Position numbers and translations under genes: made by a program
Notes under the pieces: model-generated
What the model was told of the DNA's origin: nothing
The model's input: only the letters and a program-made list of their open reading frames with translations
Database searches by the model: none
Shown: positions 12,596-55,486 of the stretch, piece after piece
How positions within the stretch are numbered: the first letter of the stretch is position 1
Layout of the letters: each line of letters opens with the position of its first letter
From: Trichoplax adhaerens
Lineage: Eukaryota; Animalia; Placozoa
DNA: 64,000 bases
Assembly: GCF_000150275.1 (NCBI RefSeq)
Contig: NW_002060965.1
Coordinates: forward strand, 1-64,000
Reading direction: 5' to 3'

Positions 12596-15500
12596 TTATT
12601 TATCTCGATTTAATATGGTTTCCGCGACCGAACGAAGACCACAAGCAAAGAGAGCCTTTACTAGTGCCAACTTTGTAAATGTTTCACCCATTAACTTACA
12701 ATGTGAATCGAGCATGTCTACACACTGTTGATCAGTATCATTACTGTTGTCTTGAGAAATTTTCTTAATGTTAGTGTTGGTGAAATCTAACTCTCTAGCT
12801 AAATTTTTCCAATCAGGACCTACTTTCTTAGAAATGATATTGATATAGGAGCTTGCAGCTACAAATTTACAGTATTAACAATTCATTAAATTTCAATTTA
12901 CTCTTACATTAAGCTATCCGTAAAGCATTTGTAAATTCATTTAATGCATACTACTAAGCACGATACAGTAATGAAGTTAAAAAACAAATAGCAGCCGGGA
13001 GACAAATTACATTTGGGATTAAGCTCAATAATGTAAGTAGAGTAAAAATGGATAATGTTAAATTAGTACGGTCATAAACTTACGCGAATCCGGGCTGACG
13101 ATGTAAATATCAACTTTTTGACCTTCGATATCATCAATTTGTCTTAGAACTGCATCATTTCTACCATTATCGTCCGTATCTTCTACTATCGCAGTCACAA
13201 GGATAAATATAAATGTTTAATAAGAGCAAATATAGGATTGAAGAAATTGTCTAATGGCATGTCTTAAAGGTAAGTTCATTAATTTGGCGGTACAAGGCAC
13301 ATTGAATGCGTTCGAGCGAAAACTAAAATCATTTCTGAGCTAATATAGCCCGATTTTATCAGTGTTGGTACCGTACAGCTGTTTTATTTTAAAATATATG
13401 CGGTTGTTTGCTAGCAGTAGAATTTACATTAAGCTTTTTAATTGACGACGTTAAAGTCAATGCGCATATTAAAATGGAAGGGATTGAATCAGTAAACGAT
13501 AAAGCTAGTATAGCTAGCACTTTAAGTCATCTATACAGAAATGAATTAAACTTTTTAGTCTACAGTGGGCTAGACTAGGAATTTCTTACAGACTTAATAT
13601 TTATTGATATTATACACGCAAAGAAAATGAGGGGAACTGATGTATAACTCAGTGTAAGAAATTATCGATTTACTAATAAATACGAAAGCAAAATTAGTTC
13701 CGTAAATCTAATAGCTCATTTACGTCAAGTACTACAAGAATATAAATCAAAATCCAAGAATTGCGAATTAACTAATGTTTATCAAAATTTATCCAGCAAG
13801 GACGCGAATTTATCACTAATTAACTTACCGGATGACATAACCCACTTATGGATAGATCCGCATTCATAAACATCGCTGCAATCGCAAAATATCACATCGG
13901 AGCTGCCATCGATAGGATTAGATGCAGGATTAAAGAGATTACAGCTAGGACATTTTATAAAGTAAGAACAATCTGATTTTTCACATCTTGGCATCCTTTC
14001 TTTAATCAGGGATGATAGTTTATTCCGAAGAAATTCATATGGCTTCTTCTCATTTATGGATTTTTTCACCTTTGCTTCTATTTGTAGCTGTAATTGTGGT
14101 TTATTTGGTACCATTCGATAGCGATATTGGATACCAATATAGGAACTCTCTTTTTTAACTACAATATCATAACAATCTTCTTTCAGCCGATATTTTGCAC
14201 ACTTGTAACGTGGCTCAATCTCTGACTTTTTCCATTCTTTATAGCAAGATACAAGTAAACAAAATAAAATGCCATCAGGAATATAAGGCATTTGTGATGG
14301 CTTAAATCCAACGTAAAGCCATCCTGACACTTTAAATCCCTGGCAATCAAATTCTTGGCTATTTGAACGAAATAAATAGGGCACGAAATACTGATCAGGA
14401 CAACCATCATCTTCTTTACTGACCTTGCAAATAATGTCATAAGATTCCATTAAATCTAATAAAAATTTTCTTTCCTTTTCTTCTACTCCGAGCTTGTCGA
14501 ATTTGTCATTAATATAGTGTTGCGACATGATTCCTGTATTTCGAGCAACTTCATATTCTGCATTTATTGCTAGTCCTTTACTATCAGGTTTATCTAACTG
14601 AATAATTGAACGAAATACATTTAATAGCCATTCAACTTGAGTAACAACTTTTCCTTTGACAGGTTCTTTTTGGCAATAAACGATTTCTCCTAGATCATGA
14701 AGATAGAGTAACATTTGATGAATATCTTCAATGCCGTCGCATAATTTGTATTCTTTGGCTAATAGCTCGATTTCTTCAGCTGTCATAATTCTGCTAACAC
14801 TCTGATTTAACTTTGTATGAAACTTTGCCGCTTCTTCATTAAATCGATCAGGAAATGTATGTAATATAGCTGCCATAATATACCATTTAAGTGGAATTTG
14901 AGAGAAACGATCAATGAAGGGTTGATGATTAACAAAGTCCCTTAGAATATTATGTAATTGTCCGCAATTTTTTTGACGCTGCAATCGCGTTTCTTCACTG
15001 TTATCCTTGTCATTACAGTTAAATATAATTCCAGATCCATATATATGATCAGCATAAGAAGGAAATTCTCGAAGAATAGTATTTTTAAATATCTCAAATC
15101 TTTCTTGACAGGCCTTTTCGTCACCTAATTTATCAGCGTGTGTCCCGACTAAAATAACCATAGGCCAAGCGATATCTTCTAAAATATCATCTATTTCGGC
15201 CTTTGTCCTAGCAATACTTTTACTACTACCTATAATTGAAGCAAGCCATTCTTGTAGGGCTTCCAAGTATGTCATTTCAGTATTATTGCCTTCTCGATTA
15301 ACGACATGATTGTTCATATCTTGAGACATATCTAGGACGAGAAGATAAATGCAATTGTGCGATAGGAATGGTTGATGAGTTATGTGATAAATAGAATGAC
15401 CAGCAAAGTCCCATAGTTTACCGTAATGGCAGTGATCTATTACTGAAGCTTGATCTGATTCAGAGCTTCCTCGAAAGTAATTCTCAAGAAAATCTAGTGG

Positions 15501-18500
15501 AATCATGTCTTCATCAGCCGGCATAGCCTGAGGACTGGTCTCGACGAGATTGCTTGCATAAGCAGTACTATCTAATCGAATTAGTGGCGATGGTGTCGAG
15601 GATTCAATATCATTCAAGCTGGAATCAGAATATGATTCCTCTTCTCGTATTTGGCGTTTAACAGTTTCGATCGCTGTAATGACTTTTCTAGCTAGAACTG
15701 CTTTAAAATCATCAACTGATTTATCATCCATGTTATAAGTGACCAATTTGACAAGTTCTTTTGTAATTACTGCTGCTGTTGTCGCTCCAACTGCTAGAAT
15801 CAAGCCTTGTCGTATAAAAGCTTGAATAAGACATGATTTTCCAACATTTTGCGGACCGGTTATCATGATCCTAATAAAGTCATTACGACAGGATCCGCAT
15901 CTTCTAGCTTTAACATAGGCTTCCTTATATTCTTTTTCTTAGGATAAATATGAATATTAAATATGAATAAAGAACGAATAAAATTATTTTATTCATGCTT
16001 CATTTTCAATTAACTTTAGCTATAGTATTCTACGAAGTAATCCAATCTGTAAATCTGCACTACAATGCATTTAAAATTATCTCAGTTTGAATCTAAATAC
16101 ATAAGACAACGGTACGAATTAAGGCTGTTGCCAATCCTAACAACTGTACAACCGTATCTATGGCTATTTAACTACTCGATAAAAATAATGACTCTATTGG
16201 TGTAACTTAGAATACCTTCGGCAGACTTCGATGCCTTTATATTTTCGTCTTGAGTTTTATCTTCCTGTTCAGCTAATGGCTCTTCTCCTACATTAAATGA
16301 ATATCGATCTTCAGAGTAACTTACGTCATTTTAATTCAAAAATTATTTATAACTATATTCCTCGAGCTGATACAGTAAAGGCTAGCGATAGTAGCAAAAT
16401 TCTTTACCTTTAAGAATGCTTTCTATACTGATCCCACAGTATCGTAATGCATTACATAATTCGTTAAGCACCTTATCGTCATGCTGAGGTAGTGTTTCTA
16501 ATAATGTTTTCATGCTCCTAGAATGGAAGTAGGCTTAGTTTAAGATCTCGCCTTAAAGTGATTTATTTTAGTATCAAATACGGTGTTTCAGTTCACTACT
16601 ACTTCCAAATAAATAATGTGAAATAATGATAGCAAATATTAAAATGCTAACTCATGGTCATTTGGTTTGGCAAAAATAGCAGATTGTTGAGATGGAGTTA
16701 AAATTTCTTTTGATCGCAGATATGAAGTAACCGCAGCGAAATTTTGTAGACAATCTCTGCTTTGTAGTGCGTAAATGTAAATTCGGTTCTGCTTTTGCTC
16801 ATTAAATGTTTCAGAAGCCTTTTCAGATGGCAATTTAGTATCAGATGTTGCGGCATCTAGACATTGTAGACGATTAATACCATTACTTGCTCGTCAATGA
16901 AAGAAATAATGATCGCATGCTCATGGTCATGACTGCTGTATTAACAAGTCTGGCGATTAATAAATTCTCACTGTTGGTGGATACTACACCTTTGTATATG
17001 TCATAACTGGAATTCTCTGAATCTACTGTATCTTCTTCGTCTATATATAAAAATAAAATCAAATTTAAACTCTAATGTAAAGATTGAATTTTCTTACCTA
17101 GAAAGGGTTCAACGTTCGACCACTAGAACTACGTTTTAAATGCAAAGTACAATCTTAATTAGATTACTAACCTTCAGTATCATCTGTTGCACTAATTCTG
17201 GGATCTACATTTTCCAAGTCTATAAATGTTTAGATAAAAGGATAACGTAATAAGTCTAATTAGCATAGGCTTCTAAATATCGATTATCGCATAAATGAAC
17301 TCTAATTTTCTCAGACTATGTAAGTATTAAAAAATATATTCGCTCCGTCTATTTAATGAAGTTTTGATTTTCAGTGCTTTATAGTTGTAATGGCTTGACT
17401 GTGTGTTTGTTCATAACTTTAAAGAGTCTTAATTTTTAAAGTAGTTGTATACCTTGATAAAATTCTTCCTCGTGAATAGATTCATCATCAATCTGATTGC
17501 CTAATATTATCAAGAAATCATAAGATGAAACTAACTGAATCAAAGACTCACAATATAGCTACTAAGGTAAGTCAATTTCAGCGGGAGTATACTACAATGC
17601 ATTACAACCACATTTATCGTACATTAAAATTACCTTCAGAGGATCCACGGCCATCGCCGTAAAAAAGCTTCAATCTAGCTTCTACCAGAGACAAACGATG
17701 CAAAATATTAGTTTAGGCTCAAAATCCATAATGAATAAAGACATAAACGTTTGCTAAGGTATTGCATTGCGATTAGTAATTAGAACTGTACCTTTAACAC
17801 CAGGTTCACTTTTGCTTGTAAGGATTTTGCTTGATGGACTTTCTGATTATAATTATTTAGAGTAGAGAAAGTGAGCGGTGGTAATTCGTATAAGTTTACA
17901 TACCAGTATAAGAGAAATGCTCATTATACCGTACTTTTGATAATGCTTTTAAATTCTTCTTCATCTGTAGAACTTTCTTGTAGCTTAGCTTTAAATGTCG
18001 AAAATTTCGAAAGGGTATTTTAGACTGACAAAATTTATAACAGCAAAAGGTATAAAAAAAATATTGGCAATGAAATCGATTACTACGATACCTTTACTAG
18101 AAACGATTTACCAATATTAGAGAAATGTACAGAGTATATTTATAGGTTAAGATGAATTCATGAAATATCAAAAATGCTAGGTACTTGACAATTATAATCA
18201 GATGGTTGCTAACTAGGATGAAGTTCTATTTTCCAAAATGATATGATTGCAATTACTCGACTGCATGGTTAACTTTAATTAATCATAATATTAAAGCGGT
18301 TGCATACCTTGATGGAACTTTCCGTCTTTAACGGATTTGTTATCCACTAGCATATCTAATAATTATAAATAAATATATTGTCATTAATTGTCCTGTTGGA
18401 GGTACTAAATTAGATTAATTTAGCAGGAGCATACTGTGATATTACATAGCCATGTTTATCAAAAAAAGGAAATTACCTCGAGAGGACTGAACTTTAGTAT

Positions 18501-21310
18501 CAAAAGAAAGTTTTATTCTAGCTTCTAATTTAAAAATTGATATGAGTAATAAGCTTTAGCCCATGACATTGATGACAGATAAAGAGAAAACTTTGGTAAG
18601 GTATCACCAGTTGTGATTATTACTGTACCTTTAGCGGGAGCTTTTTTCCTGCTATAAAAACTTTCATCTGTTTTATTTCCTAATATTCAAGGAAAAGACA
18701 GATAGATAGTCGTAATGAATTGTGCATACAGATTGACAGACTTAAAACAAATTATTGAAAGATACATAGTACTCATTGATTGATTCGTTATGAACAGAAA
18801 TTGCGTTACAATTTCGAACATAATTGGGCATAATTATATACCACTGAATATCAGACTGAGATAAATATGTAGTTTGATTCTTAAATTATTTGCACTCATT
18901 CATAATTCTAAGGTATAATTATTGCTGAAGTAGCAAGATACCATGAAGGAATTCTTGGCCAATGGAAGACTCATCAACAGAGTGATTGCCTAGTAATTAA
19001 TTATAAGAAATCATCTAGATGAAGTAAACTTAATCAATCTGTTATGATAATTAGCAGTCCCATGATCCAACATAAAGGAAGATTACTTAATGCATCGTAT
19101 AGTAAAATCACCTTGAGAAAACTTAATTTCTTCATCCAAAGAACTTTCTTGTAACTTGGCTTCGAACACCAAAAAATTAAACAAAAAGTGCATTTTAGAC
19201 CAACAAAATTCATGACAGCATAAGGCATAGAATATTGGCCATGAAATTGATTACTACCGTACCTTTACTAGAAGCAATTTCTTGATGTGGTAAGCTGTTC
19301 TTTGATTTTCTTTCTGATATTCAAAGCGAGAAAGAAAATCAATCTGAATTCATGTTTTAGCTGAGAATACAAATCATCAAACGATGTAATACAGCCTAAT
19401 ATAAGTTACCGATGCCTTGAGGTGTATTCTTTTTCTTCTTTGCCTTACTTTTACGGCCTGATGCTAATTGCCCTATCTTACTTGCAGTTGACCCAATCAA
19501 TCCTGAGAAAGTGCTACTAGCGGCGACTATTTTTGATTCTACAGCAACGCCAAAAATTTAGTTAGCTGTTAAGTATCTATTTTACTCATATCGTTTCTTT
19601 GCGTAACAGAATACTGTTCTAATGCGATAAAGTTTCTTTCTTATAGTTATCAGACGAGCATAATATAAATAATACGTTTAGAAGCTAATATCTTATGATT
19701 GATTACTTACAGTCTGAAAATAAAATTAAAATATATCAGACACCATAATGAAAGCCAAACAGTAACGAATACAGGTCAACTGATATCAACCTAATATAAG
19801 CTAGTTACTGCTTTTTTAAGAGATTACATGTCTGTATTATGGTTAGTCTCCATCAGCAAGCTATGACTTTGCGTTAAAAAGTAGCATAGTAATATAGTTT
19901 GAAGCTAACATTATAATTATGGATATTGAACTTAATTGCACGGTTTGGTATCTTATATTCAAGCTCACAATAAGTTAGCTCCTGTAATAAGATTGGATCT
20001 TCGAAGTACTTGCACTATTTTGCTTTCGATATATCAAATGGATAATTCAACGTAGTTTAAACTATTATTTCAATGGTAAAGTCGAGGTGATTACTGCTTT
20101 AGCTGACATTTAAATAAATGGTTAGTGGAAAACTTTTCCAGATAGCACAAATAGAGCTGTTATGGAGCCAAGCTCCGAAATAATAAAGGCCTTGTTAATT
20201 AAAACATCTCATATAAATCGTTGTTTGTTCCAGTATTCTAATAAACGTTAATGAATACTTATTTATTGATAAGGTTAATGTCTAAGTAATTGAATACTAA
20301 TACCTAAATGTAAGGTGTAATTTGTGCGGAGCCTTAAGGCTGTAATTAGCTTAAATAAATTTATTATTGTTAATTAGCGTTAACTTATACTGATTTATGT
20401 TAACTTCTTCTATTTAAATTCCTATACTATACAGTGTAAGTCGCTATGTCTAAGATACCAATACATGAACCGTCGGCGGAGGCCGAGACTATATAGACTC
20501 GAGGACTAAATTAGCTGTTCAGTTCCATTTTAATCATTTTTAGATCCACTTGATCATTATTGCTAGGAATTTCTAACGTACTTTTTAGTAAATTCTTTTA
20601 CTAGGATTTATCTCAATAAAGTAAAGTCCTTAAACCTATTACCCGTTGGCTACTTATCTGTGTAGTCGAGAGTTAGTTCAACTACGATAAATCGCCTAAG
20701 TCAGTTGGAGACACGAGTAATCGTGACACTAGTGTAAGACCCGTTCGAAAAGGGAAATTCGTAACAAAACCCTATAACTTTTTATGAAGTGAATCACCTA
20801 CAGAAATCCGGACTGATTGATAACGGGACTATTCCTTACATTGAGGTACATCTACAAGTTCTATCAACAGTTTCCTTCATCTATTCAGTTTAGAGTTACT
20901 CATTTAAATGACTCCTTCCTTTCAATATAGTGTAGGTAACGGCATAAATCACTGACGTGAAGTACGATATACCTACTAAAGGTAAAATGGCTTCATAACC
21001 ATCTGAACTTACCTTCATTAGCAGGTTCATTTTGCTTTGCTTCTTGTCGTAACGTTGTACCTAATTCTTTAATCGACTGCATTAAAGATCCTTCTAAGAC
21101 TTCACAAAATCCATAAAATTCTAAGTCGTTTTTTCTTCTTAAAATTGATATAAAAGATTTCGGTCCTTGATTTTTTATTTTTCTTAACTCCTGATCTGAT
21201 AGAATGCTTCGATTATGCAAAGTAATGAAAATGTCCAAAGAAGTAATGTTAACTAGGATGTCATGCTTATATTGACGGATAACATCGTTAATATGCCAAC
21301 TAAGACCCAT
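12596..21310 (-). CDS. Roco GTPase 1: CARD - micro-exon linker - CARD - Roc - COR - Cys cluster - death domain (~1290 aa, ~20 exons)
   Basis: Exons: 21310-21013 (CARD-like), 19538-19410, twelve 48-54 nt exons between 19313 and 16990, 16856-16652 + 16517-16408 (CARD: ..LRSKEILT..LLETLPQHDDKVLNELCNAL), 16287-16216, 15937-13829 (Roc-COR), 13182-13084, 12858-12596 (DD: ISRKVGPDWKNLARELDF..LVKALFACGLRSVAE*). Roc motifs: GPQNVGKS, WDFAGH, YHITHQPFLS, VGTHAD. COR motif: LLYLHDLGEIVY..VEWL. All junctions are GT-AG and in frame. Confidence 0.85.
16990..19313 (-). repeat. Array of phase 1-1 micro-exons built from a repeated three-exon unit
   Basis: Exons 19313-19263, 19159-19112, 18989-18942, 18679-18629, 18524-18477, 18355-18308, 17988-17935, 17842-17792, 17681-17634, 17500-17453, 17219-17172, 17040-16990. 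Recurrent types, e.g. EARIKLSFD/EARLKLFYG, AKLQESSLDEE/AKLQESSTDEE, GNHSVDESS/GNQIDDESI. Confidence 0.75.
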
Positions 21311-23809: not shown

Positions 23810-24205
23810 CTAAATTGAGGATAAAAGATGATATTTCGTAGCATCATGTATAGCGCACTCGTATATCTTGAAAGTTGAAAATGTTAAACCTGGATATTGT
23901 AGACGATTGTCCGAAAACGCAATACTGTACTCGTAAATCCTATTCCACTCTTTTCTTTGTATAGGGTGATCTTTTTTCAATTTTTCAACTATATTTGGTT
24001 CTCTGCACTCGCATAAAACTTCTAATATTGTATCAAGCTTTGCTTTTGAGCCGAATTCAGAATACCATGCATCCAACAGATCATTACACTGGCGAAATCT
24101 GCCATGGTTTGAATCAACTATTTCATCAATGTTATTCGAAGACAAATGTAACTTTTTACCAAATTCGGTAAACTTTGCTTAATTTATATTATCCGCAATA
24201 TATCT
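23810..24205 (-). pseudogene. Dead duplicate of the terminal DD exon of Roco 2
   Basis: Reads YIADNIN*AKFTEFGKKLHLSSNNIDEIVDSNHGRFRQCNDLLDAWYSEFGSKAK.. and aligns with exon 26221-26492. TAA at 24179-24181 replaces TCA. Confidence 0.75.
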
Positions 24206-32200: not shown

Positions 32201-33194
32201 TTGCCTTCTTCAATTTGATTGTCAAGTTCACTTAGTGGCGGCGACTCTAGATTAGTATAGTATAAAACTTATATTACATTGATGTTGTAACAGCTAAAAT
32301 ATGTTTGATCTGTATGATTGTATGGCATAATGAGTGAATTGAATACTGTAGTTCATACTAATGTTATTATCTAAAAGTCAATTTAATTTAATTTGCTAAT
32401 AATCATATAAGGATATAGGTATTATCAATATTTCAAGCTTTTAAAAATGCAGTAACAATATATCTGAAGTCTTACACAAAATGGCCAACAAAAGTGATAA
32501 ATTCTACCTTATTTGATTTTTAAAAAATATTACTACTCGCCAAAATACTCTCAGCTATCAACGAATAACCGTGCATAAGAGCATTAGCTGATTCAGTGTA
32601 TAAGCAAATCAGTCATTTTCAACAAAGCCTCCACATCAATATATGTATGTTACGTTTGTATATCTAGTGTGCCATGATTATAATCTACTAAACAAATCGT
32701 GTTAAAGATACAAGTAACTTGTCCTACAAGAACCTTGATTGCGGCTTATTTCATGGGCAATATCGAATCTACTAATGCGTCGTAAGCCATTTTTCAGTTC
32801 CTCAAAGGTGGAATACGTGTATGAGCCACGTTTCTGGTACCAGATATAGAGAAATGTCATCGCTTGATCAACTATGTTATAATTTTTTGCCTTAATTGCT
32901 TCAATGTCAATTAAAGGATCTAATATCGCTGCTAATTTTATCCAGTCCATGTCAATCTTGTTTGCAATTCTGAAAAAAACGGCTGTAGGATCTATAAAGC
33001 GCATAAAATACACCAATCTTAAACATGCGGTAGCAGAAAAATGCTAACAGTTTGCAGTTCGAATTATTAATTATTAATAGAATAATCAAGTTATTAAACG
33101 AAACAATCAATTCGATTAACTTTCCTAATCGTAACAACGTTGAATTTAAGAATCGATATTCAAGGTAAGGTTACGGACCTTCTATGCTATCCAT
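26221..33194 (-). CDS. Roco GTPase 2: DD - DD - Roc - COR - Cys cluster - DD (~1090 aa; start uncertain)
   Basis: Exons: 33194-33179 (putative ATG, aaaATGg), 32991-32734 (DD), 32246-32175, 31943-31692 (DD), 31431-31360, 31230-31156, 30391-30326, 30060-27940 (Roc-COR; GPQNVGKS, WDFAGQ, IGTHAD), 26935-26873, 26492-26221 (DD: IANNIKSAKLEEFGRRLYL..LLEAW). All internal introns are phase 1. Confidence 0.8.
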
Positions 33195-35632: not shown

Positions 35633-38600
35633 ATGAGTAACTTTTTTCAAAAACTTGGAAAAATTGGGGCTGAAATTGACAAGTCAACTAGGCATTTTTT
35701 AAGGGATGCTGGAGATGAAATAGAGAGAGCATCTTCGCGCATAGGGGATGAACTCGCGAGAGTATCTACGCGGGTAAGACGTTCCTTGCGTCGGGGTCTT
35801 CAACGGAATCCTCAGAGGAAGAATTAGAAGAAATAAAGATTGAAAATAATGCAATCGAAGCTACTGCGGGGGCTGAATTTTCCAACACAGAATTATCTAA
35901 TGACCCGAAAATGTCGGCAGACATTCCTACAACTGAAGCTACCAAATCAGGTACCAAAAATCCTGTAGTAGATAATTTAAAATGACTGTAAGATTTAAAG
36001 ACTCTGGATAGGATAGAAGTGAGTTATGGAATTATTTCTCTAGATCAGCAACTAGAAAAATCTTTGACTATTAATGCATTACTTTCCAATGCGTTACCCC
36101 AAACTCTACCATATTTATAAGTACATCAGCTTTCAATTATAAATTGATTTTCGCAAATCATCGCCAAGATAGTCCTGACTAAACTGATTGTTAGATAAAT
36201 CTATTCATAAATTTTGATTTTTTTAATCAACAAACTGCGGTACTATACAATCAGCTGTAATAAGTTCGAAATTATTTGATCGAATTAGTATTGTGCAAAA
36301 CACTCCATCCTATGCTGCCTTTAATTACTATTTCTATAAGAATTAGTTGTTGCAGAAGCTACATGGACTGTTCAATCTTCAATGTAAATCATATAATTCG
36401 AAAGTAATTTTGAATAGAGTTCTATGGTTTAAAATGACAGCCATGTTCTGTTTTTGTTCGGTATATTGCCTATTAATAGATATTAAAGCGTGGTTTAACC
36501 TAATTAGTTTGACTAATTATAATAAAAATTTATTATATCATCATTGCATGTCATATACGTACTAGTTTTTGTAGCACCTTACAGCTATTTGTGGCACTTT
36601 ACGTGGGCTGCTCTAATAAATATGTTATTGTGCCTAAATATTTCATAGAACAAGAGTACCATGAAGCTTACCACAAAGCAAAAAAGCATGGATTCTGTCG
36701 TAATGACTTCATCCGCTTTCTCATAACTGGTCCTCAAAATGTTGGCAAGTCATGCCTTATTCAAGCATTAATTTATCAAGGACAGATCAATAAGGTGGAA
36801 GCTACAACTGCCGCAGATATCATATCTGAACTACTAAATCTGATAACTTATAATATGGACGATAAGTCAATAAATGAATTTAAGAAAATCTTAGATAATA
36901 AAGTCAATACAGCGATAGAGACGGTTAGAATATTAGTCAAGAAACCATCAAACTCATTGAATTCTCAAGTCGATGACGATTCACAATCTACTACGGAATC
37001 GAAAGATGAATCTAATAGTGTAGTGATGATAGATAATACTCCAATTGAAGAAGAATTTCTGAATAAATCAGTTTCCTTAGATATTTTGGCAAAATATTTT
37101 CAACAAAATCGTAATTTACAGGCACAATTTCAGCCAGATTATTGCCGATATGCCAAATTGTGGGATTTCGCTGGCCATTCTATCTACCATGTAACTCATC
37201 AACCATTTCTATCTGATCATTGCATCTATATTTTGGTTTTAGACATGTCTCGAGACATTGATAGCTATGTCATTAATAGGGAAGGTCAAGAGCTAAACTT
37301 GACTTACCTTGATACATTACAAGAATGGCTAACTTCCATAATTTGTAGCCGTCGGGATCAATGTGTGACAAGAGCTTTAATTGATAACGCTTGGGAAGAA
37401 ATTGCTTGGCCTGTCATTATTCTAGTAGGTACACATGCTGATAAAATAGGCGATGGACAGGCTTGCAAGCTACGATTTAGTGAATTTACTTGCAAGCTAC
37501 GACAAGAATTTCCCGCTTATGCTAAAAATATATACGGTTCAGGGCTCATATTTAACTGTGATGATTTAGATAATACTACAGGTGTTATTGAGCAACGTCA
37601 ACGTGATTGCTCTGTCTTACATAATATCATGAAACAATTTGTGATTAATTCTCCAATTATCGATAACTTTAGTAAAATTCCGATTCGATGGTATCCCATG
37701 GTAGCTCTATTGCATAATTTCTCCAACATTAAAGATGCAGAAAGTGCAAATGGAGACTATCAACAAGTAGAAGCGATTAGTAAAATCATATCGACTGAAG
37801 ATGTACAACGATTAGCTGAAAAACATTATTTATGCGATAAAGATGAAGATATTCGAATGATGTTATCGTATCTACATGACATCGGTGAAATTGTATACTG
37901 TCGAAAAGGATCTGCTAAGGGCATGATTGTGACTCAAGTTGAATGGCTTTTGAATATTTTTCGTTCTATCATTCAACTACGTAAACCTCATACTAAAGGT
38001 TTAGCTACGACAGATGAATATGAAAAGGCGAGAAATACAGGCATTATGTCATTTTCTTACATCGACTTCCAACTGAATAAGCTTAACGTGGCAGAAGATG
38101 AGAAGAAATACATACTCGATCTAATGGAATCACACGATATGATTTGCAAAATCAACTCTAACAATCTTGATAGTACCAGCGAAAACGTCCAATATTATGT
38201 CCCCTATCTATTTCGCTGGATAAGTCAAGATATCGATTCGAGTCAATTTAAAACATCCAATTGGCTTTACATTGGATATGAACGTTGCCATATACCTTAT
38301 ATCCCAGATGGTATTTTATTTTGTCTCCTTATTTCATGCTTAAAAGAATGGAAAAACTGTATTATTGAGCCTGGATATAAGTGTGCTAAATATCGATTTA
38401 AAGATGATTATTACGATATTATTATTAAGAAAGTGAAATCATATATTGCTCTTCAATACCGTTATCGAGATCTGAGTGACAATCCCGAGTTACAAGAAGA
38501 AATTGAACAAAAGATGACAGAATCAATCCAAAAAAATAAACCTTACGAGTTTGTTCGACATAAAATAGAATTACTAATTGAAGAGAGAATGCCAACCTGC

Positions 38601-40049
38601 CACCCATTTCGAAGTCACTATTTCACAAGATGCCCTCACTGTCAGGCTTTCAATATGATTGAAAAAAGCTTAGAAAATAGTGGTAAAATATTTTGTGACT
38701 GTAACGAAATTTACGATCACGCATCTTCTCATGGATGGATAGCTGGTAGGGTAATAATTAGTACTACTAGTTAAAATCATATTATCTATTAGTTTATCAG
38801 ACATGCAACAACTGTACCTTTGATGCTGTAATTATCTAGTATTGCATTTTAAGATTTTCACTAATTCAGCAGTATAGCCAATTGATCTCAATTTATTAAT
38901 TATTACTTGTTTAATAGAATGTCTCTTACCATCATACAAATCACAGGTAGTAAAAAATAACATGAATAATAATTGACGTTTTCACTCTATTTTCCTACAA
39001 TAACGCGATTCAATACTGATGATGATTTAAATTAGGCTTTAATTAAAGAAACACTTACGCTTCAGTAATGATAAGACTAAATCTAATAGGATAAATGACA
39101 GTCGATGATCCAATTAATCATTACGTAACGATATAAATAAACATTAAGATCTTCATTCTCGACATAATTCGATCACATGTATTATTTTAGCTTGTACATT
39201 GAATAAAACGAAAGTTTCAAGAAAACTGGCCAGGTTCAAATCGGATGATAATCTAAAAGAATCGAATCTAAATAACCTGTTACACAATGGTAAGTAATGA
39301 AATTGCTCTTCATCAATACCAAAATATCTTAAAACAGAGAGTTATCTTTGACATTTTAGCTGTAGTACTGTCGTTATTTGATATATTGTTTATAACTCAT
39401 TGCCAACATGATTTCCTCGCATAGCAGAGCATAAATGAGAATGTTAATGCCTGTATTGTTGCTATCCTTTCTCACCCAGCAATGAAACCAATACTCATTA
39501 AAACCAAAATTCGTAATAATTGATGAAAGGTCGCATTAGCCGATACCAGTAGGATACGATAATGCACAGTTATAAGAGTAAAATCCAAAAGCAATAATCT
39601 TTTACAATTTAAAGTAGTAAAACACATTTAGACTTGATTGCAATTATGATGTGAAAGCTACCTGATGTAATCGTTAGTGATATTTTAGCTGCTTCAGTAA
39701 AGTAATTTACATGTATATTCAGGCACAAATTACGCTCAAGTAATGCAATAAATTTCGCATTTCAGAGAGTAAAAGAAATCAGTGCTTTATCACTATTGCT
39801 GATAATATGAACGGAAAAAAGTTGAAAGAATTTGGCTGGAGATTAGGTTTATCTTCTATAGATGTAGGAGACATTGTTGATAGCAATGAAGAAAGATTTG
39901 CAAAGTGCATGAAATTGCTGGAAGCATGGCATCTTAAATTTGCGTCAAAAGGGAATAAGGATAGTTTATTGGAGGCCTTAAATAGTTGTAAACTTGCTAA
40001 TATAAGTGATAGACTTATCAAGATATTTACTATCGATGATAAAAATTAA
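35633..40049 (+). CDS. Roco GTPase 3: amphipathic N-terminal helix - acidic linker - Roc - COR - Cys cluster - DD (apparent 1-nt frameshift in the first coding exon)
   Basis: Exons 35633-35950, 36649-38745 (Roc-COR; GPQNVGKS, WDFAGH, VGTHAD, LSYLHDIGEIVY), 39191-39289, 39766-40049 (DD: IADNMNGKKLKEFGWRLGL..LLEAW). The 35633 ATG frame stops at 35825. One extra base near the G-run 35783-35786 would join it to the open frame ending in the phase-1 donor at 35950. An in-frame ATG also exists at 35911. Confidence 0.75.
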
Positions 40050-46278: not shown

Positions 46279-49200
46279 ATGGATCAAGAGCAACGTCAAG
46301 CTATCCTCGATCATTGGCATACACTAGCCGAATCGATGCCCAGTAATGATATGACAAATAGTCTAATTACAGAAGGAATACTCTCGCCAAATGATTTACA
46401 GGAAATTAATGCCAAAGAAACTGAAAACAAGAAGAATACTACCATTTTGACTAAAATTTTAGCCTCAGTATCGCCTGATTGCTATGCCATCTTTATTGAT
46501 GCTTTGAGACAGATTCCCAATAAGAACAGCCGATTAGCAGACATGATTGAAAGCCGTTTTAAGAAACAAGCTTCCGCTGATTATAGAAGCGACGCTAGTA
46601 AATCGAAGAATTTATCAAGTGCTCATAAACGACAAACAGTAGATCAGTTAGGTAAGGAAATAAAGTAGTAACGGCAGTTTTTCTCATTGTAAAGCGATTA
46701 AATTACTCAATTAGTGTGTTAATATGAAAGTATAACTTATAAAAATTCGAGCCTAGTCTCATTGCAGGACTAGTTACTATAGATAAGTACATTAGAACCA
46801 GCGCTATTAAAATTGAACATTTCTTTACTTCGAACTTAATTTTGGGGTTATACCGTAACCATGGACTACCATTTGTGCATATGAACGCATATACACTGTT
46901 TTATTTGTTTGACTCACCGGCATCCATTAGATATAAAATTGATTGATTTCATCGATAAAGATAGTGGTAGTAGGCATTGTAACCTGTAACTGACGATTAT
47001 GAAACAACTGTAATATTTTAAATCAGTTTTAAGGAACAAATTTCGCTTTTCGCTGTATTTAAAATCATCAGCACTCTAAATCGGCCAATGAATCTCGTTG
47101 AACTTAAGATTCGTAATTCTGCTACGGTTTCAATAGAATTTGTTAATTACTCGTGTAAATGGCACCGTGCATGCAGTAAATATGACTGATCTCTCTAGCT
47201 ATCCCTAATATACTGTACGGATACATTAACATTGAGCTATAGATACTACCTATTTCCGCTAATTAGATTAAAACTCAGCTATAGCTTTATTAATTGACTT
47301 AGAAAAATAATGAAATCGAAGGCTACTATCAATATTAAAACTTTAAAACATGTACCAGAAGCACCAGTTTACATCAAATAGATTTTGCGCAATTTTTGTT
47401 AACCGTTACCTCTTAATAAGTATGAAAATTTCTAGCATTTGCGTGAGTAACAGGAAATTAATCATAAATGAATAAGATTATCCCAAATAATTACGGATCC
47501 CCGACTACCCACACCTATAGCATACAGCGCTTATCTTAAATACGATCGTTTGTAATTAAAATTAACGCAAAAGAGAAACAGGTAAAGCTTTTGTCAAATT
47601 TGTAACTTTTCTCGAACTCAAACACTTAATTAATATTTTAGATAAGCTACCGAAAAAATGCTCAAGATCAATGACTCAAGAGCATCGTAAAATGTTAATA
47701 GACAAACGTATATTACTTACTCAAAAATGTCAGGATCAAATCTTACCGATATATGAATATTTACTTGGAACGAATGTAATAACATCATACCATAAACAAA
47801 CAATCGAATCTAAATCGACGGCTTTTGAGTAAGGAATTTTTATACAGTACATGTTCAATAACTGTTAATCAATATTCTATTCTAATATACAATGTCAAGC
47901 TAAATTACTAGTTTGCTTATTTACTGCAAGAATGAATTTTGTAGTTAGAGAGCAGTTATCGTAATTGTTAAATTTTTTTTAACAGAAAAGTTTGCACTTT
48001 ATTGGATATTCTGCCTGAACGTGGCGATAGAGCCTTTGATGAGTTTTGCAAAGCTTTAACAAATTTTAAAATAACCGTAGAAAACTTCAATACTGGTAAG
48101 CATTAAAGTTTACGAATAGGCCTAACGATTAAAACTGAACGATATGATACATGATTATCCTATTTTCTGATAGAAATAACAATAAAGTGATCAGAGTAGA
48201 AAATAGTACGATAACTACGTAATGAATTTAGATTTTCAATTAATAGTTTCATTATACTCAACTAAATCAATAGTTGGTAATTTCAGATTATTACGTACAG
48301 TTTTCGTAATTTAGTAAGTACAGCTTTTTTCGAAACTTGAGCTCTATAGAGTACGATGCGCTTACTGAATAGAAATTGCTATCATTTATTTTTCAATTAA
48401 TTTATCAGGCAAACAATTATCTTTGCTAATATCGATATTACATTGCACAACTACGACATTCATTTAAAACGTAATTTAGTTACATTACTTCGCAGTATAT
48501 GATGAATTCGATATGAAGCCATTTCTTTGCTTCACCTTTTATTTGTAAGCAGCCATTAATAATCATTAATTTAACAATTGTGAATCTTATTCAAATCAAA
48601 AGGGGTTGATTTTGAAGACACTCGAAAAGACACAGGTACTTCTATTTAAAGAAACAATTTGATATTTTCCGGAATTCTTTGTAATTTTATAAACATAACA
48701 GTGCTTATTTTACGGTAAGCTCGATAATATTCAGCTATAATAGGGTCTCTTATAGTCAAAATAGAGGAACCAAATAGAAATATATAATATTCTAAATCTG
48801 TTTCTTTAGCAAGAGAATAGTCATTAAATTTATGAAAAGACCATGCCTTTCTAAATCACTTACGATTGAAAGATATTCACATCATTACTTCATCAAATTG
48901 AATTAGAAGTGAATAAAAAAATTTTTATCTATACTAATATATATACCTTACGAATTAGAAAGGGATAGATTGAAATTCAGTGCAAAGAATTACTGTTTGC
49001 TGATAGAATTTACTTATCTATTTTAGACAAGATTTCAATTGTAGAGTCTAAAAATTGAGCTAGTGAATTACATGCCTTGATTGTTATGACCACAATTACT
49101 TGTAATATAGTCGACATTGAATCAAAAAGTGAAAATTGATAGTATGAAGATGTTGTTTCTATAATGCTTTATCGTTATGAATTTTTGTTGATGATAGTGG

Positions 49201-49809
49201 TTGATTTTATGCAAATATAATAATGAAAGAATTATCATTTTTAGATATTACCCGGTACATAGTCAGCACTAGATCAGAAATGGCAAACCGACAGAAACAA
49301 GGTATTCAGTAATTATTCACAAAAGCAGAATATTATAGAAGTAAGAGAATGCTAGTTATTATACTTATGATGATATGAAGATTATAAAATTTGTTAAGTT
49401 TAGATGTTACTCAGCAAGGATCTGACAGTGGATTAATACATGCAAACCAGCAGGATGAAGATGGTATGTAGTAGCTACTAGTAAAGAATGTAATAAAGGA
49501 ATTTTGTAGATACTAGCCATTGACTTGGAACCTATGTGATGCAATTTACAATATCTAGATATTTCTCAATACTTTTTTGATGTGGCGGAACATCTGGAAG
49601 AGGACTGGATTAACTTAAAATTAAAATTAGATAATGCTGGAAAAATTGAAATCAAGAACATTCAAGACAAATATAAGAAAAATTATGATCAGGCCTATGA
49701 ATTTTTAGAGCAATGGTTAATAATTTATGGCGAAAATGCAACAAAAAAGCGATTAATCGGAGCATTGAAAGCCATACAAAGAAAAGATATAGCAGATAAA
49801 ATAAAATAA
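46279..49809 (+). CDS. Death-fold adaptor A: CARD - CARD - DD (~356 aa)
   Basis: Exons 46279-46651 (CARD: MDQEQRQAILDHWHTL..LITEGILS..YAIFIDAL), 47642-47828 + 47986-48095 (CARD: MTQEHRKML..LLDILPERGDRAFDEFCKAL), 48603-48635, 49245-49301, 49404-49463, 49559-49809 (DD: VAEHLEEDWINL..FLEQW..LIGALKAIQRKDIADKIK*). In frame with GT-AG junctions; no catalytic domain seen. Confidence 0.85.
48266..48694 (+). repeat. ~430 bp near-identical direct repeat of 43752-44180
   Basis: Base-by-base match with only a handful of differences. Confidence 0.9.
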
Positions 49810-53142: not shown

Positions 53143-55486
53143 TTAACTACTCATATTAATCTGCGAGACAAGTCTTGCATTGCTTAATTGATCTAATCTC
53201 TCAGCAATGGCTCCCAAACCTGCTGATATCAAAGCATTCATGAGGAAGCCAACATAAGCATTTTGTGGTTGAGTTTCTTTCCAATAATGAAGCATTGCAA
53301 AGCAACGTTGATCTGTAGTAGTTTGATCCACTTCTATTTTTTTCAAATCCTCAAACTCTAGATTTAATTGAATTCCAACATCCTTCCAATCAGTTCCAAT
53401 GCTTCCGTAAATATCTCTAAAAAAGCATTTCACTGAAGTACAATTAATTTGCAGTTAAAATAATGCCCTTAATAACGTTATAATCCATGTAATATGAGAA
53501 TGTTTGATTAAGATAAAAGGTAATGGAAGAGATGTTTATCTCATTGGATACAGACAAGATTAGTAAATAGTGAGGTAGATACACTTAAGTGTAGTCTTTC
53601 ATCATGGTAAGCCTCTTAACAACGACTAACAGCACGTTCTACTTTTAAAATAGAGTATAGCAAGAATTGTCTTTTATCGCATACAGACGAGACTAGTTAA
53701 GAGTTATGTGTAGTCCTTAATTGTGGTAAGCCTGCAAACACCAAGTCACTATTCAAAAATAGAGTACTCGTATAACAAGAATTGTCTTGTATAGCATACA
53801 GACAAGACTAGCCCAGAGTTATATGTAGTCCTTGATTATGGTAAGCCTACAAACACCAAGTTACTACTCAAAAATAGAGAACTCGTATAACAAAAATTGT
53901 CTTTTATCGCATGCAGACAAGACTAGCCAAGAGTTATGTGTAGTCCTTGATTGTGGTAAGCCTACAAACACCAAGTAACTACTCAAAAATAGAGTATAAC
54001 AAGAATTGTCTTCTATCGCATATAGACTTATGTGTAGTCCTTGATTGTGGTAAGCCTACTAACGCCAAGTAACTACTTAAAAGTAGAGCACAGAAAGATT
54101 TACTGGATTGCCATCTGTAGCCTGCAGACAAAACTCGTCAAGGGTGGTAGATAGTTATGTGCAATCCTTCATTCTTGAAGCCTATGAACGACTACTTATA
54201 GCATGGAACTACTTTTAAAAACAGAGTAGAACAAGATTTACCGGGTTGTCTGCTATCGTATACAGACAAGACTAGTTTAGAGTGAGGTAGACAGAGTTGT
54301 AGGTAGAGATTTATTGTGGTAAGTCTATCAACACCAAGTAATTACTTAAAAAATAGACTACAGAAGCATTTACCGGATTGTTATCTGTAGCGTAAAGACA
54401 AGAGTCACAAGACTCATTAGAGAGGTAGTTAGAGTTATGTTTAGTCCTCGATGATTGTAAGCCTATTAGCGACTACGATCAGCATGGAACTACTTCAAAA
54501 ATAGAGTACAGTAAACTTTACCGGATTGTCGAAGATGCGAAGCCGTATTCTCTTGATAGTCGAAATCTTCATCACCACTTTCTTCAGACTCTTCTATAAC
54601 AGCCATATAGAAGACAGGAGTAAGTTAGAAATAGAGCAAAGACATCGTATTACAACTATTATGGTGTGAATAATAAATGCTTTGGTTCAAAGTTTGAAGG
54701 AGACAACAAAGTGATTCCATTATTCACTGCAGTCATCTTCTTTTCAACTGTTGGGGTAAACTATACCATTTTGAATTTGAATTTTTTTACGTATTATTCT
54801 GCCACCACAACTTTACTAATAAAAATGATAAATTGCTATCAAAGACGTACAACGCTTCTATATTATTATGGCTGATTATGCCTCCTACTTTACACAAGCA
54901 TTGAATGTAGGTGAAAGACAGTCATAGCCTGTGCTTTTACCATTTTTATATACTGTCTATCAACGGACTGCTGATTCCATCAAATGCATTTCATGTACTG
55001 AATTAACACTACTGTATTTATCTCTGGATGCTAAGATCTACTGTAGTCTACTAGGAAAGTCGTTTTATGCTATTCTAGTACTTGATCCATCTCGAGTGTC
55101 CTGTCTGACGGTGCTCATTTACCTGATGGCATCCTGGCGTCCACTTCCAACTGAGTTGCTAAATCTCTTAGTCCTGCTCGCCTAATTGCGTTGACAATCT
55201 TGTGAAAATCCGATTCAAATTTTCTCAATAAAAACAAGGTGACAAATTTGGTGACCACTTCTGGCATAGGCTGTTGTTGACTACAACGCAAGAGGCCTTC
55301 CTTTTCTAAACTAGTGACCACTTTATCAGCTAAAAGGTGAGTTAGCATAACAGAAAGGCGTTCTTGAGTTAAACTACTCCTTAAACTGGCTAAATTTTGA
55401 CGTAAAGCAAGGCCTTTATAGCTCGATTGGTCCATCAGATAGGTAAAATTGCGATGATTGTGTGCTTTGGAAGCAATCTCGGCCAT
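53143..55486 (-). CDS. Death-fold adaptor B: CARD-like - acidic linker - DD (RAIDD/CRADD-type architecture, ~241 aa)
   Basis: Exons 55486-55123 (LRQNLASL..MLTHLLADKVVTSLEKE..FHKIVNAIRRAGLRDLATQL), 54593-54522 (EESEESGDEDFDYQE..), 53432-53143 (DD: IYGSIGTDWKDVGIQLNL..CFAMLHYW..LMNALISAGLGAIAERL). Phase-1 junctions. Orthology to CRADD is not established. Confidence 0.8.
53545..54520 (-). repeat. Intronic tandem array (~8 units, ~100-150 bp) derived from an exon+intron unit
   Basis: Recurring catacagacaagactag..gagttatgtgtagtccttgattgtggtaagcctacaaacaccaagt..actcaaaaatagag. The three units nearest exon 54522 keep the same caatcc(g/a)|gtaaa donor as that exon. Confidence 0.85.

Follow-up and report, generated by a model that had tools for sequence, protein, structure and literature searches.

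A cluster of Roc-COR and death-fold genes in Trichoplax adhaerens is a local array of a placozoan Roco GTPase family

Introduction

Roc-COR modules switch their oligomeric state with the bound nucleotide, and CARD-DD adaptors such as RAIDD bridge death-domain (DD) scaffolds such as PIDD to CARD caspases. Both kinds of architecture meet in a gene cluster of the placozoan Trichoplax adhaerens. For T. adhaerens, Civiero et al. (2014, Chem Biol; PMC4104024) reported at least 17 ROCO genes with flanking CARD and death domains. This family combines the same Roc-COR with CARD, death, TPR and other modules and almost certainly includes the genes analyzed here. TRIADDRAFT_62404, which is named in that paper, is among the closest homologues (60% identical) of the gene we call R2. 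The original prediction for this locus noted that death-fold Rocos were already known from early-branching animals. By term search, the text of the paper contains no mention of this cluster or of adaptor neighbours, no RNA-supported DD-DD-Roc-COR-DD model and no module exchange.

Several better known systems invite comparison. DAPK1, an animal protein tied to cell death, also carries Roc-COR and then a C-terminal death domain in one polypeptide. However, its kinase, calmodulin-binding segment and ankyrin repeats are absent from the genes in our window (Pfam, Trichoplax sp. H2 orthologues), whereas two of these genes, R1 and R2, have extra N-terminal CARDs or DDs. We considered DAPK1 orthology and rejected it, as the window Rocos are single-exon, lineage-specific paralogues with neither kinase nor ankyrin repeats. 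NLRs and Apaf-1 likewise fuse a nucleotide switch to death-fold recruitment domains, and placozoan NB-ARC-TPR proteins (PMC6321704) carry TPR, as do TPR-Roc-COR-DD relatives of the window genes. In the window, however, the NTPase is of the Ras-like GTPase type and is joined to a COR module for dimerisation, instead of being a ring-forming NACHT or NB-ARC; the TPR relatives have their repeats N-terminal and their DD C-terminal, and the window Rocos have no repeats. Pfam finds only Roc-type GTPase matches and no NACHT or NB-ARC in the window Rocos, which were therefore rejected as NLR/STAND receptors, the resemblance being one of functional analogy only. The PIDDosome (PIDD1, RAIDD/CRADD and caspase-2) is similar in that two small genes beside the Rocos, A and B, consist of CARD plus DD and could in principle both be recruited by a DD scaffold. 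It differs in that A has two CARDs and the cluster has neither a ZU5-UPA scaffold nor a caspase.

Kaur, Burroughs, Iyer and Aravind (2021; PMC8195603) treat AP-GTPases as switches of apoptotic and immune complexes. In the bacterial systems they describe, an NTPase, which may be a Roc-type AP-GTPase with COR, bears a Death-like domain that recurs on the effector genes next to it. The original prediction follows the same reasoning, with a Roc-type GTPase replacing the STAND NTPase switch; the idea is reasonable but, given that work, not new. The bacterial neighbours carry effector domains and are linked in an operon-like manner, whereas the neighbours here are pure death-fold genes in an animal genome, linked because of tandem duplication. 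Mollusc ROCO-TIR/Death proteins from the Aplysia immunome (PMC9334734) are another invertebrate case in which Roc-COR is joined to adaptor domains of innate immunity (TIR, Death), but their partners are TIR, LRR, EF-hand and MBT, and the authors report no array and no CARD-DD neighbours.

Results

The window is a 64,000-nucleotide stretch of T. adhaerens DNA (contig NW_002060965.1). Three Roco genes (R1, R2 and R3) adjoin the two small death-fold genes A and B, and the five correspond to consecutive Trichoplax sp. H2 models, TrispH2_003507 to 003511, with the gene order kept. The H1 and H2 strains are ~99% identical at the cluster, so that shared order is uninformative on functional linkage. 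The features are as follows.

12596..21310, minus strand: R1 (TRIADDRAFT_61412), CARD…CARD-Roc-COR-DD, about 20 exons; H2 orthologue TrispH2_003507 (P0023, 1318 aa) mapped exon by exon
21014..21310, minus strand: R1 exon 1, CARD 1; 26 paralogue exons in the genome, many of them Pfam CARD matches
16973..19539, minus strand: R1 inter-CARD spacer, about 13 small exons, placed by exact 6-mer seeds from P0023 residues 118-365
16406..16854, minus strand: R1 CARD 2 in two exons, 16651-16854 and 16406-16516 (Pfam CARD and H2 protein mapping)
13830..15938, minus strand: R1 Roc-COR exon (Pfam Roc and COR-A); limits from ORF and alignment, splice sites approximate
12063..13394, minus strand: R1 tail module, comprising linker exon 13085-13186, DD exon 12599-12859 and 3' flank
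23813-24202, minus strand: orphan DD pseudo-exon, copy of the R2/R3 tail DD; Death match with one in-frame TAA
26221..33004, minus strand: R2 (TRIADDRAFT_61414 plus 61415; H2 TrispH2_003508), DD-DD-Roc-COR-DD; exons 32734-33004 (Death), 32175-32246, 31692-31943 (Death), 31360-31431, 31156-31230, 30326-30388/30391, 27940-30060, 26873-26935 and 26221-26492 (Death)
35633..40049, plus strand: R3 (TRIADDRAFT_61416; H2 TrispH2_003509), short helix-Roc-COR-DD, from H2 mapping, Pfam Roc and COR-A, and Death; exons ~35633-35949, 36648-38744, 39190-39288 and 39765-40049
46279..49809, plus strand: A, CARD-CARD-DD, from an H2 gene call with CARD and Death (356 aa), exon-level Pfam and splice enumeration; CARD1 ~46279-46664, CARD2 ~47574-47828 plus 47986-48076, DD ~49559-49809, inner splice sites inferred
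53143..55486, minus strand: B, CARD-DD (H2 TrispH2_003511, P0025, 241 aa); exons 55123-55486, 54522-54593 and 53143-53432

The domain content originally predicted for these five adjacent genes, seven intact DDs and five CARD-like domains, holds up. All seven DD exons score 24.8-50 bits against Pfam Death (PF00531, cut-off 22.6), including those of R1 (12599-12859(-), 50 bits), B (53143-53432(-), 39.5 bits), R3 (39765-40046(+), 24.8 bits) and A (~49559-49806(+)). The whole 105.6-Mb genome has 118 Death matches (Pfam Death, exon level), from which ~0.05 copies would be expected by chance in the 43 kb of the cluster versus 8 present. The five CARD-like domains are all death folds, supported with unequal strength by Pfam, paralogues and predicted fold, and in two of the five the assignment to CARD is firm. 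A CARD1 reaches 32 bits against Pfam CARD (PF00619, cut-off 23.9), while R1 CARD2, at 21.7 bits (E 2e-4, P0023 residues 404-459), just misses that threshold. A CARD2 is split on two consecutive exons, which cover positions 2-45 and 47-73 of the CARD model at 15.8 and 18.9 bits. R1 CARD1 has no direct Pfam match itself and is related at E 5e-12 to 1e-9 to paralogue exons that score as Pfam CARD. The predicted fold of the B N-terminus matches the Apaf-1 CARD at Z 11.7 (rmsd 2.2 over 93 residues), a Z value within the range that the tool warns helical bundles can reach; nearly all remaining top matches are CARDs, ranked above DDs, DEDs and PYDs, and weak sequence leads also point to CARD.

All three Rocos exceed the Pfam cut-offs for both Roc (PF08477, 36.9-43.8 bits, cut-off 27) and COR-A (PF16095, 44-50 bits, cut-off 35.3), and by Pfam their full-length H2 orthologues contain no kinase, LRR, ankyrin or WD40 part, as had been proposed. 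In each gene Roc-COR lies in a single-exon ORF, at 13785-15938(-) in R1, 27929-30217(-) in R2 and 36513-38771(+) in R3. The Roc domains would be expected to bind GTP because the G1, G3 and G4 motifs (GPQNVGKS, DFAGQ/H and THAD), which are conserved in all three, are intact. A structural model of the R2 Roc-COR exon (pTM 0.77) aligns over ~720 columns with LRRK1, LRRK2 and the C. tepidum Roco (3dpu, 6hlu) at E 1e-13 to 1e-15. A family-wide insertion of ~100 residues, predicted to be disordered, separates G2 from G3, and the "extra Ras-like domain N-terminal of Roc" of Civiero et al. may be one Roc split by it into two Pfam hits. Among solved structures, the DDs come nearest to FADD, THOC1, PIDD and ankyrin, and FADD (E ~1e-5 to 1e-6) is a better match than CRADD or PIDD. 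The CRADD DD appears at E 0.12 for the R1 DD and is absent from the solved-structure matches of A and B.

The original prediction would have fallen had the death-fold exons not been spliced to Roc-COR. For R2 this splicing is borne out by RNA-derived contigs of four runs from four studies, in which GT-AG junctions run from DD1 and DD2 through three mini-exons and the Roc-COR exon to a linker exon and DD3. Joined, these exons keep an open frame of 1086 aa with 11 differences from the H2 protein P0022, and all introns determined are phase 1. R3 lies head-to-head with R2, with 2.6 kb between their start codons, and reads as a short N-terminal helical segment, Roc-COR, linker and DD; its first exon shows a 1-nt homopolymer length difference between H1 and H2. 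The orphan DD pseudo-exon is 58% identical to R2 DD3, its in-frame TAA is common to the H2 strain, and no H2 gene model covers its position.

R1 is built in the order CARD, ~13 micro-exons (mostly 45-69 nt, the first 129 nt), CARD, Roc-COR, linker and DD, and its H2 orthologue scores for Pfam Roc, COR-A and Death as well as for the second CARD. The Roc-COR exon is 91-94% identical in DNA to two copies on another contig, C1372. The tail module matches C1344:20593-21929 at 93.4% identity over 1339 bp; that 35-kb contig has A-like CARD/DD exons and no detectable Roc-COR. Body and tail thus have different nearest relatives and make R1 a recent mosaic, which is a new result. Death-fold tails accordingly move between Roco genes and loci that have no Roc-COR exon. 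The C1372 paralogues, the nearest relatives of the window Rocos, have no DD or CARD tail detected within 1.5 kb downstream and no adjoining adaptor-type DD.

Across the T. adhaerens genome we count ~45 Roc-COR loci, compared with the at least 17 that Civiero et al. drew from first-generation gene models. COR-A gives 49 matches and the R2 Roc-COR exon 58 at E<=1e-20; by hand count, at least 25 Roc-COR loci are followed within ~3 kb by a Death or CARD exon on the same strand. What stays constant across the family is one Roc-COR exon of 2.1 kb, with a small linker exon and a death-fold tail exon after it. The N-terminal module varies, being two CARDs, two DDs or a short helix in the window and TPR repeats elsewhere, where TPR-Roc-COR-DD architectures occur. 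The three window Rocos, the two C1372 copies and one C1398 copy form a clade with SH-aLRT 100. Two multi-exon COR-A loci on C1408 are likelier to be canonical Rocos, and some paralogue exons elsewhere in the genome carry stop codons. The cluster is one local array of a large, placozoan-specific group of Roco GTPases, a member of a published family and no new kind of system.

The small genes have relatives of their own. The DD of A has paralogues of 67%, 53% and 52% identity on other contigs versus ~32% in the window, where the N-terminal DDs of R2 are nearest (31-34%). The DD of B has just weak paralogues in the genome and within the window is nearest to that of R1 (31%). The introns determined in B are all phase 1. 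Its CARD exon has a 66-68% identical counterpart in the assembly of another public sequencing run, which suggests from sequence conservation that function is retained. We considered A and B as RAIDD/CRADD orthologues and rejected this; the architecture of B fits, but CRADD is missing from its DD matches and its CARD is nearest Apaf-1. In the kinds of death-fold exons that make them up the two genes resemble the Rocos. They are probably placed here mainly by clustering and shuffling of death-fold genes, and they are plausible partners or competitors of the Rocos.

Discussion

We consider it probable that the cluster is an array of Rocos in which a Roc-COR nucleotide switch is fitted with death-fold recruitment modules and which has grown by duplication and module exchange. 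By analogy with studied Roco proteins, GTP would bind the Roc domain, and the nucleotide state would alter Roc-COR dimerisation or conformation and with it how the attached DDs and CARDs are spaced or exposed. These domains could in turn nucleate homotypic death-fold assembly and draw in partners with a DD or CARD, in a chain ending in CARD-caspases encoded elsewhere in the genome. We infer GTP-dependent assembly, partner recruitment and caspase output from domain architecture. Against this mechanism, the window Rocos have no recognisable sensor domain, repeat-type sensors included, and the putatively disordered insertion interrupts the GTPase between G2 and G3. Studied Roc-COR modules also dimerise and do not form rings as do the STAND NTPases that nucleate death-fold filaments, so the STAND analogy may fail mechanistically, and the C-terminal DD of DAPK1 is not known to nucleate filaments.

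The original prediction went further, to a signalosome encoded as one co-encoded set. A GTP-bound Roco would oligomerise, its DD would recruit the DD of A or B, and the adaptor CARD would recruit a CARD-caspase, as in a PIDDosome or inflammasome. Its anatomy stands, that is, intact Roc-COR, death folds only, and adjoining death-fold-only genes; the dedicated scaffold-plus-adaptor set finds no support here. A and B do combine CARD and DD as RAIDD does, the five genes lie side by side with their order kept in H2, the DDs of B and A are most like those of R1 and R2 within the window, the B CARD exon has its counterpart in another run, and CARD-caspases occur elsewhere in the genome (also PMC6321704). 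However, the near identity of H1 and H2 voids the gene-order argument, the DD of A has much closer paralogues off-window, those of B are weak, and no caspase lies in the window and no effector in the cluster. A-like exons occur on C1344 apart from any detectable Roc-COR, the C1372 Rocos lack both death-fold exons within 1.5 kb downstream and neighbouring adaptor-type DDs, and the DDs are nearer FADD than CRADD or PIDD. In animals, moreover, functionally linked gene sets are rarely clustered while tandem paralogue arrays are common, and a dedicated set is unlikely. A different reading of A, B or both is that they cap or compete with Roco assemblies, like vertebrate CARD-only and PYD-only proteins. 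They are small and made of death folds only, and the same tail on R1 and on the C1344 locus with no detectable Roc-COR (~92-93% identity) is as expected of a competitor; a CARD-DD architecture fits a bridging adaptor equally well, and we regard competition as quite improbable.

The death folds might instead act as in DAPK1, regulating their own GTPase within a molecule or dimer or docking single partners, with no filament or signalosome and perhaps in control of the cytoskeleton or of vesicles. Roc-COR and then a C-terminal DD is exactly what makes up the C-terminal half of DAPK1; Roc-COR structures are dimers by their entry titles, and sensor repeats are absent from the H2 orthologues by Pfam. 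We doubt this reading. R2 has three DDs and R1 has two CARDs and a DD, and so many death folds in one protein, together with rapid tail swapping, agree better with exchangeable recruitment units than with a fixed part for autoregulation; the TPR-Roc-COR-DD relatives resemble receptors. That the array consists mostly of functionless, decaying duplicates is very hard to credit. The array does contain one broken DD exon copy, stop codons interrupt some of the paralogue exons elsewhere and the first exon of R3 differs by a nucleotide between strains, but ORFs of at least 700 aa remain open, the G motifs are kept across the family, R2 is transcribed and spliced correctly in runs from four studies, and none of the seven DDs falls below the Pfam cut-off.

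In the switch-and-module reading that we prefer, the family would have grown and diversified through duplication and exon-module exchange, and by analogy its members may serve placozoans as NLR/Apaf-1-like or DAPK1-like switches in cell death or immunity.

Structure of the Roco and death-fold gene cluster

We scanned the genome of Trichoplax adhaerens strain H1 (105.6 Mb, 1414 contigs, ∼31% G+C), in which the window forms the first 64 kb of contig C1392, and obtained gene structures by mapping proteins of the sister strain Trichoplax sp. H2 onto it. The large ORFs of the three Roco genes R1, R2 and R3 are 100% identical to TRIADDRAFT_61412, 61414 and 61416, respectively. Their H2 orthologues are the consecutive genes TrispH2_003507, 003508 and 003509, followed by a 356-aa model with CARD and Death domains and then by TrispH2_003511, the orthologue of adaptor gene B.

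Features of the window (coordinates, strand, description; DD, death domain)
1880-2401 and 8116-8637, minus strand: two 173-codon ORFs without Pfam match
4021-4922: assembly gap of 902 N, between the two 173-codon ORFs
12596-21310, minus strand: R1, ∼20 exons (CARD, ∼13 small exons, CARD over two exons, 2.1-kb Roc-COR exon, linker, DD)
23813-24202, minus strand: eighth DD exon, 2 kb downstream of the last exon of R2, a full-length copy of the R2/R3-type tail DD
26221-33004, minus strand: R2 (DD, small exon, DD, three mini-exons, Roc-COR, linker, DD)
27941-30058, minus strand: R2 exon whose translation holds, at residues 100-168, the insertion in the Roc domain
35633-40049, plus strand: R3 (short N-terminal segment, Roc-COR, linker, DD)
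46279-49809, plus strand: adaptor A (CARD exon, second CARD over two exons, DD exon)
53143-55486, minus strand: adaptor B (121-residue N-terminal domain, 24-codon exon, DD exon)
58461-59174, plus strand: NuA4/EAF6-type housekeeping gene, at the right-hand end of the death-fold cluster

Exons were searched singly, and annotated H2 orthologues were used in place of joined spliced models. Roc and COR-A exceeded the Pfam cut-offs in three single-exon ORFs of 718, 763 and 753 codons. Six-frame scans of the whole genome gave eight exon-sized Pfam Death matches inside the window and one Pfam CARD match, and all seven DDs that lie within gene models are above the Pfam cut-off at the exon level. The anatomy of Rocos with death-fold neighbours claimed in the original prediction is thus real and well supported. 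Its statement that these Rocos carry no kinase, LRR, ankyrin or WD40 part is borne out as well, since Pfam detected none of the four, nor any further domain, in the full-length H2 orthologues.

The inner splice sites of A are putative: when splice combinations were enumerated to give the 356 aa of H2, one solution was left, whose fourth exon is doubtful, and a solution with all introns in phase 1 does not fit. R2 and R3 lie head-to-head with their start codons 2.6 kb apart, a layout that would allow shared regulation. In exon 1 of R3, a run of G at ∼35792 reads GGGG in H1 versus GGGGG in H2; the H2 model reads straight through, whereas the same frame in H1 would stop at ∼35825. The JGI model of R3 cuts out a short intron of ∼57 nt here (donor GTAAGA at 35774) with the G run inside it. 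H2 (L001, L002) is longer than the window at ∼20.5-21.0, 35.0-35.5 and 47.5-48.0 kb, by ∼480, 490 and 700 bp, and in the H2 protein the ∼480-bp extra accompanies a tandem duplication of 18 residues where the first exon of R1 ends. The window begins where the contig begins, and no telomere repeats were found there.

R2 is transcribed as DD-DD-Roc-COR-DD

The annotations of R2 are in conflict, as JGI splits the gene into 61414 and 61415 and leaves out the tail DD. We therefore aligned contigs of four runs from four studies to 26260-32259; one of these runs is labelled RNA-seq in its record, and the remaining three have the behaviour of RNA. All four contained six minus-strand joints of GT-AG type (32175|31943, 31692|31431, 31360|31230, 31156|30388, 30326|30060 and 26873|26492). 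A seventh, 27940|26935, was seen directly in one run, with matching loose ends on both sides in the other three. A loose contig end at 32253 reads the final residues of the first DD exon. The apparently non-canonical first intron of R2 proved to be an alignment overhang, its true sites being 32734 and 32246 (GT..AG). Once joined, the exons give an uninterrupted frame of 1086 codons, with 11 differences from P0022, the orthologous H2 protein. Taken together, the seven joints and the open frame demonstrate that DD-DD-Roc-COR-DD is a real transcript, which resolves the conflict between the two annotations. The splicing of death-fold exons to the Roc-COR exon, fixed in advance as a test of the original prediction, holds for R2, with GT-AG joints in RNA-derived contigs.

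Unspliced, retained or alternative forms of R2 also exist, as some contigs extend, at 26908-27917, over the intron of 1 kb that separates the Roc-COR exon from the linker exon, and one run contains an alternative joint, 30391|30795, with the two donor sites (30388/30391) 3 nt apart. In R2 and B, all determined introns are in phase 1 and the length of each internal exon is divisible by three, the 2121-nt Roc-COR exon included, so that gain, loss, skipping or swapping of an exon would keep the reading frame. No contig skipping the Roc-COR exon of R2 was seen in the four runs.

CARD-like domains of R1, A and B

The first CARD of A is clear (Pfam CARD, 32 bits), and the second is matched in two halves that complement each other, model positions 2-45 on one exon and 47-73 on the next. 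The second CARD of R1 scored 21.7 bits, slightly below the Pfam cut-off. For the first exon of R1 there was no Pfam match and a PDB sequence search gave nothing significant; we assign it to the CARDs because of its 26 paralogue exons genome-wide, many of which coincide with Pfam CARD matches. The N-terminal exon of B found no paralogue besides itself in its own genome. In a protein-atlas search CARD clusters adjoin this domain, and a 68% identical relative has a weak full-length CARD match. Its predicted structure (pLDDT 72-92 over residues 21-120) best matched the Apaf-1 CARD (Z 11.7, rmsd 2.2, 93 residues), and CARDs made up almost all of the highest-ranking matches, with DDs, DEDs and PYDs further down. 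Based on the evidence from A, R1 and B together, the five CARD-like domains originally counted are a fair number, with the CARD subtype firm for two of the five.

The GTPase core contains an insertion in Roc

A model of the Roc-COR exon of R2, built with 20 family members, reached a pTM of 0.77, and Foldseek matched it to LRRK1, to the Roc-COR tandem of the C. tepidum Roco and to LRRK2 over ∼720 alignment columns (E 1e-13 to 1e-15). The G1 motif GPQNVGKS, the conserved switch-I threonine, the G3 motif DFAGQ/H and the G4 motif THAD are intact in R1, R2 and R3. Family-wide, ∼100 extra residues, predicted to be disordered, lie between G2 and G3 (switch I to DxxG). The insertion separates a P-loop part, matched by Pfam Ras, Dynamin_N or MMR_HSR1, from a part matched by Roc. 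Civiero et al. (2014; PMC4104024) describe an additional Ras-like domain N-terminal of Roc in TRIADDRAFT_62404 and others; splitting of the Pfam matches by this insertion may account for such a second GTPase domain.

R1 is a recent mosaic within an expanded Roco family

Genome-wide we found 49 COR-A matches and 58 matches to the Roc-COR exon of R2 at E≤1e-20, corresponding to ∼45 Roc-COR loci, some of which may be assembly duplicates. Most are single exons of 700-800 codons, and at least 25 loci, counted by hand, have a Death or CARD exon on the same strand within ∼3 kb downstream. Relatives further away, at 36-40% identity, have the architecture TPR-Roc-COR-DD. The downstream death-fold exons and the TPR relatives point to a constant core of Roc-COR plus death-fold tail, with the N-terminal module varying. 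A quick maximum-likelihood tree of 25 Roc-COR exons places R1, R2 and R3 in a single clade with two copies on contig C1372 and one on C1398 (SH-aLRT 100). The earliest branch of this clade is R3, and the remaining members divide into R2 with the C1398 copy and R1 with the C1372 copies. Two multi-exon COR-A loci on C1408 (1571578-1572035 and 4252768-4253202) are structured unlike the single-exon family and are candidates for canonical animal Rocos of the LRRK, DAPK1 or MFHAS1 type.

Comparison of the bodies and tails of these genes reveals exchange of modules. R2 and R3 are 50% identical in their tails, equal to their bodies. R1 and R2, by comparison, are 69% identical in their bodies, and their tail DDs lack significant similarity. 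At the DNA level, the body of R1 (Roc-COR exon plus a little flank; 13157/13670-16201) is 91-94% identical to the two C1372 copies (L037, L039), and its tail (linker exon, DD exon and 3' flank; 12063-13394) is 93.4% identical to C1344:20593-21929. The DD of R1 is 92% identical to one on C1344. Similarity of the C1372 copies to R1 ends inside or just before the linker exon, and no DD or CARD exon was detected within 1.5 kb after them. C1344 is 35 kb long and contains CARD and DD exons and no detectable Roc-COR, though a 50-N gap 1.4 kb further on might hide such an exon. R1 is thus a recent mosaic whose body and tail have different nearest copies, with breakpoints in or beside the linker exon. 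On C1344, a 519-codon ORF between death-fold exons (L032, L034; C1344:28737-30293, minus strand) had been guessed to encode ZU5-UPA, and it has no Pfam match.

We also considered whether A might be R1 minus its Roc-COR exon. Their architectures agree with this, but sequence identity is only 21-29% and the DD of A is far closer to relatives elsewhere; A is not a recent deletion derivative of R1. A recent relationship of this type instead links the tail of R1 and C1344.

The eighth DD exon of the window is 58% identical to the tail DD of R2. A single in-frame TAA interrupts its helix 1, a stop that H2 shares, and no H2 gene model covers the site. This exon could be a dead duplicate of the terminal exon, or it could be what is left of a fourth Roco gene.

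Relation of A and B to the neighbouring Rocos

The original prediction read the five genes as a dedicated GTP-gated set resembling the PIDDosome or inflammasome, which implies a specific tie of R1-R3 to A and B. Nothing beyond adjacency was found for this tie. Inside the window, the DD of A is nearest to the N-terminal DDs of R2 (31-34%) and that of B to the DD of R1 (31%). Genome-wide, the DD of A is closer to DDs on C1344 (67%), C1268 (53%) and C1398 (52% and 47%), and the R2 DD ranks 18th, while relatives of the B DD are weak (25-31%). B looks single-copy. A representative search of 1.8 billion proteins with its N-terminal exon returned the H2 orthologue and one 68% relative only. A 66-68% identical counterpart of its CARD exon is present in the assembly of another public run, on a 2.3-kb contig that stops short of any DD exon. 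Among solved structures, FADD is nearest to the DDs of R1, A and B (E 1e-4 to 4e-6), and CRADD appeared only for the R1 DD (E 0.12). No caspase gene lies in the window; caspase genes are found on C1408, C1402, C1412 and C1, with a CARD exon just upstream of one on C1408. Since identity between H1 and H2 throughout the locus, in introns too, is 98-100%, their common gene order carries no weight. A complex prediction for the R1 and B DDs scored 0.00 in both runs, which we take as no answer, counting neither way.

Discussion

The locus adds one more array to a published family. Civiero et al. (2014; PMC4104024) report at least 17 T. adhaerens ROCO genes, with Roc-COR flanked by CARD, death, TPR, LRR and AAA domains, findings that Teng et al. 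(2024) restate. The survey of placozoan innate immunity by Kamm et al. (2019; PMC6321704) describes an expansion of NB-ARC/Apaf-1 proteins and CARD-caspases, and the terms Roc, ROCO and GTPase are absent from its main text. TRIADDRAFT 61412, 61414, 61415 and 61416, plus the guessed 61417 and 61418, do not occur in the searchable literature. What is new here is the RNA-verified model of R2, a family count ∼2.5 times the published figure, the likely explanation of the second GTPase domain, and direct DNA evidence, at 93% identity, of a Roco tail module common to a locus without detectable Roc-COR.

An NLR-like or PIDDosome-like mechanism would be a sensible analogy, one for which the literature offers precedent. 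Kaur et al. (2021; PMC8195603) place a Roc-type AP-GTPase beside the STAND NTPases as a switch for complexes of apoptosis and immunity, and in the bacterial systems they describe a Death-like domain sits on the NTPase with copies on neighbouring effector genes. In Aplysia, ROCO modules are joined to TIR and Death domains (PMC9334734). The most extended form of this idea, which we consider unlikely, is that placozoan Roc-COR constitutes a second, GTP-driven class of death-fold signalosome switch parallel to the Apaf-1-like NB-ARC proteins. The sensor-less, multi-death-fold R1-R3 would then act as hubs that bind neighbouring CARD-DD proteins and relay or damp signals to CARD-caspases, and ongoing swaps of tail exons between Roco and adaptor genes would rewire their partners. 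At present, the function of this locus, a well-documented member of its published family, is hypothetical.

The placozoan Rocos are small, lack a kinase and have their core on one exon, which makes them convenient for studying the effect of nucleotide state on the Roc-COR dimer, a question still open for LRRK2. Their recent body/tail mosaics offer a natural experiment in the evolution of death-fold wiring. If Roc-COR gates death-fold assembly, early animal cell-death and immune signalling would have had two unrelated nucleotide switches, STAND ATPases and Roco GTPases, and the Roc-COR-DD half of DAPK1 would be the remnant of a once larger system.
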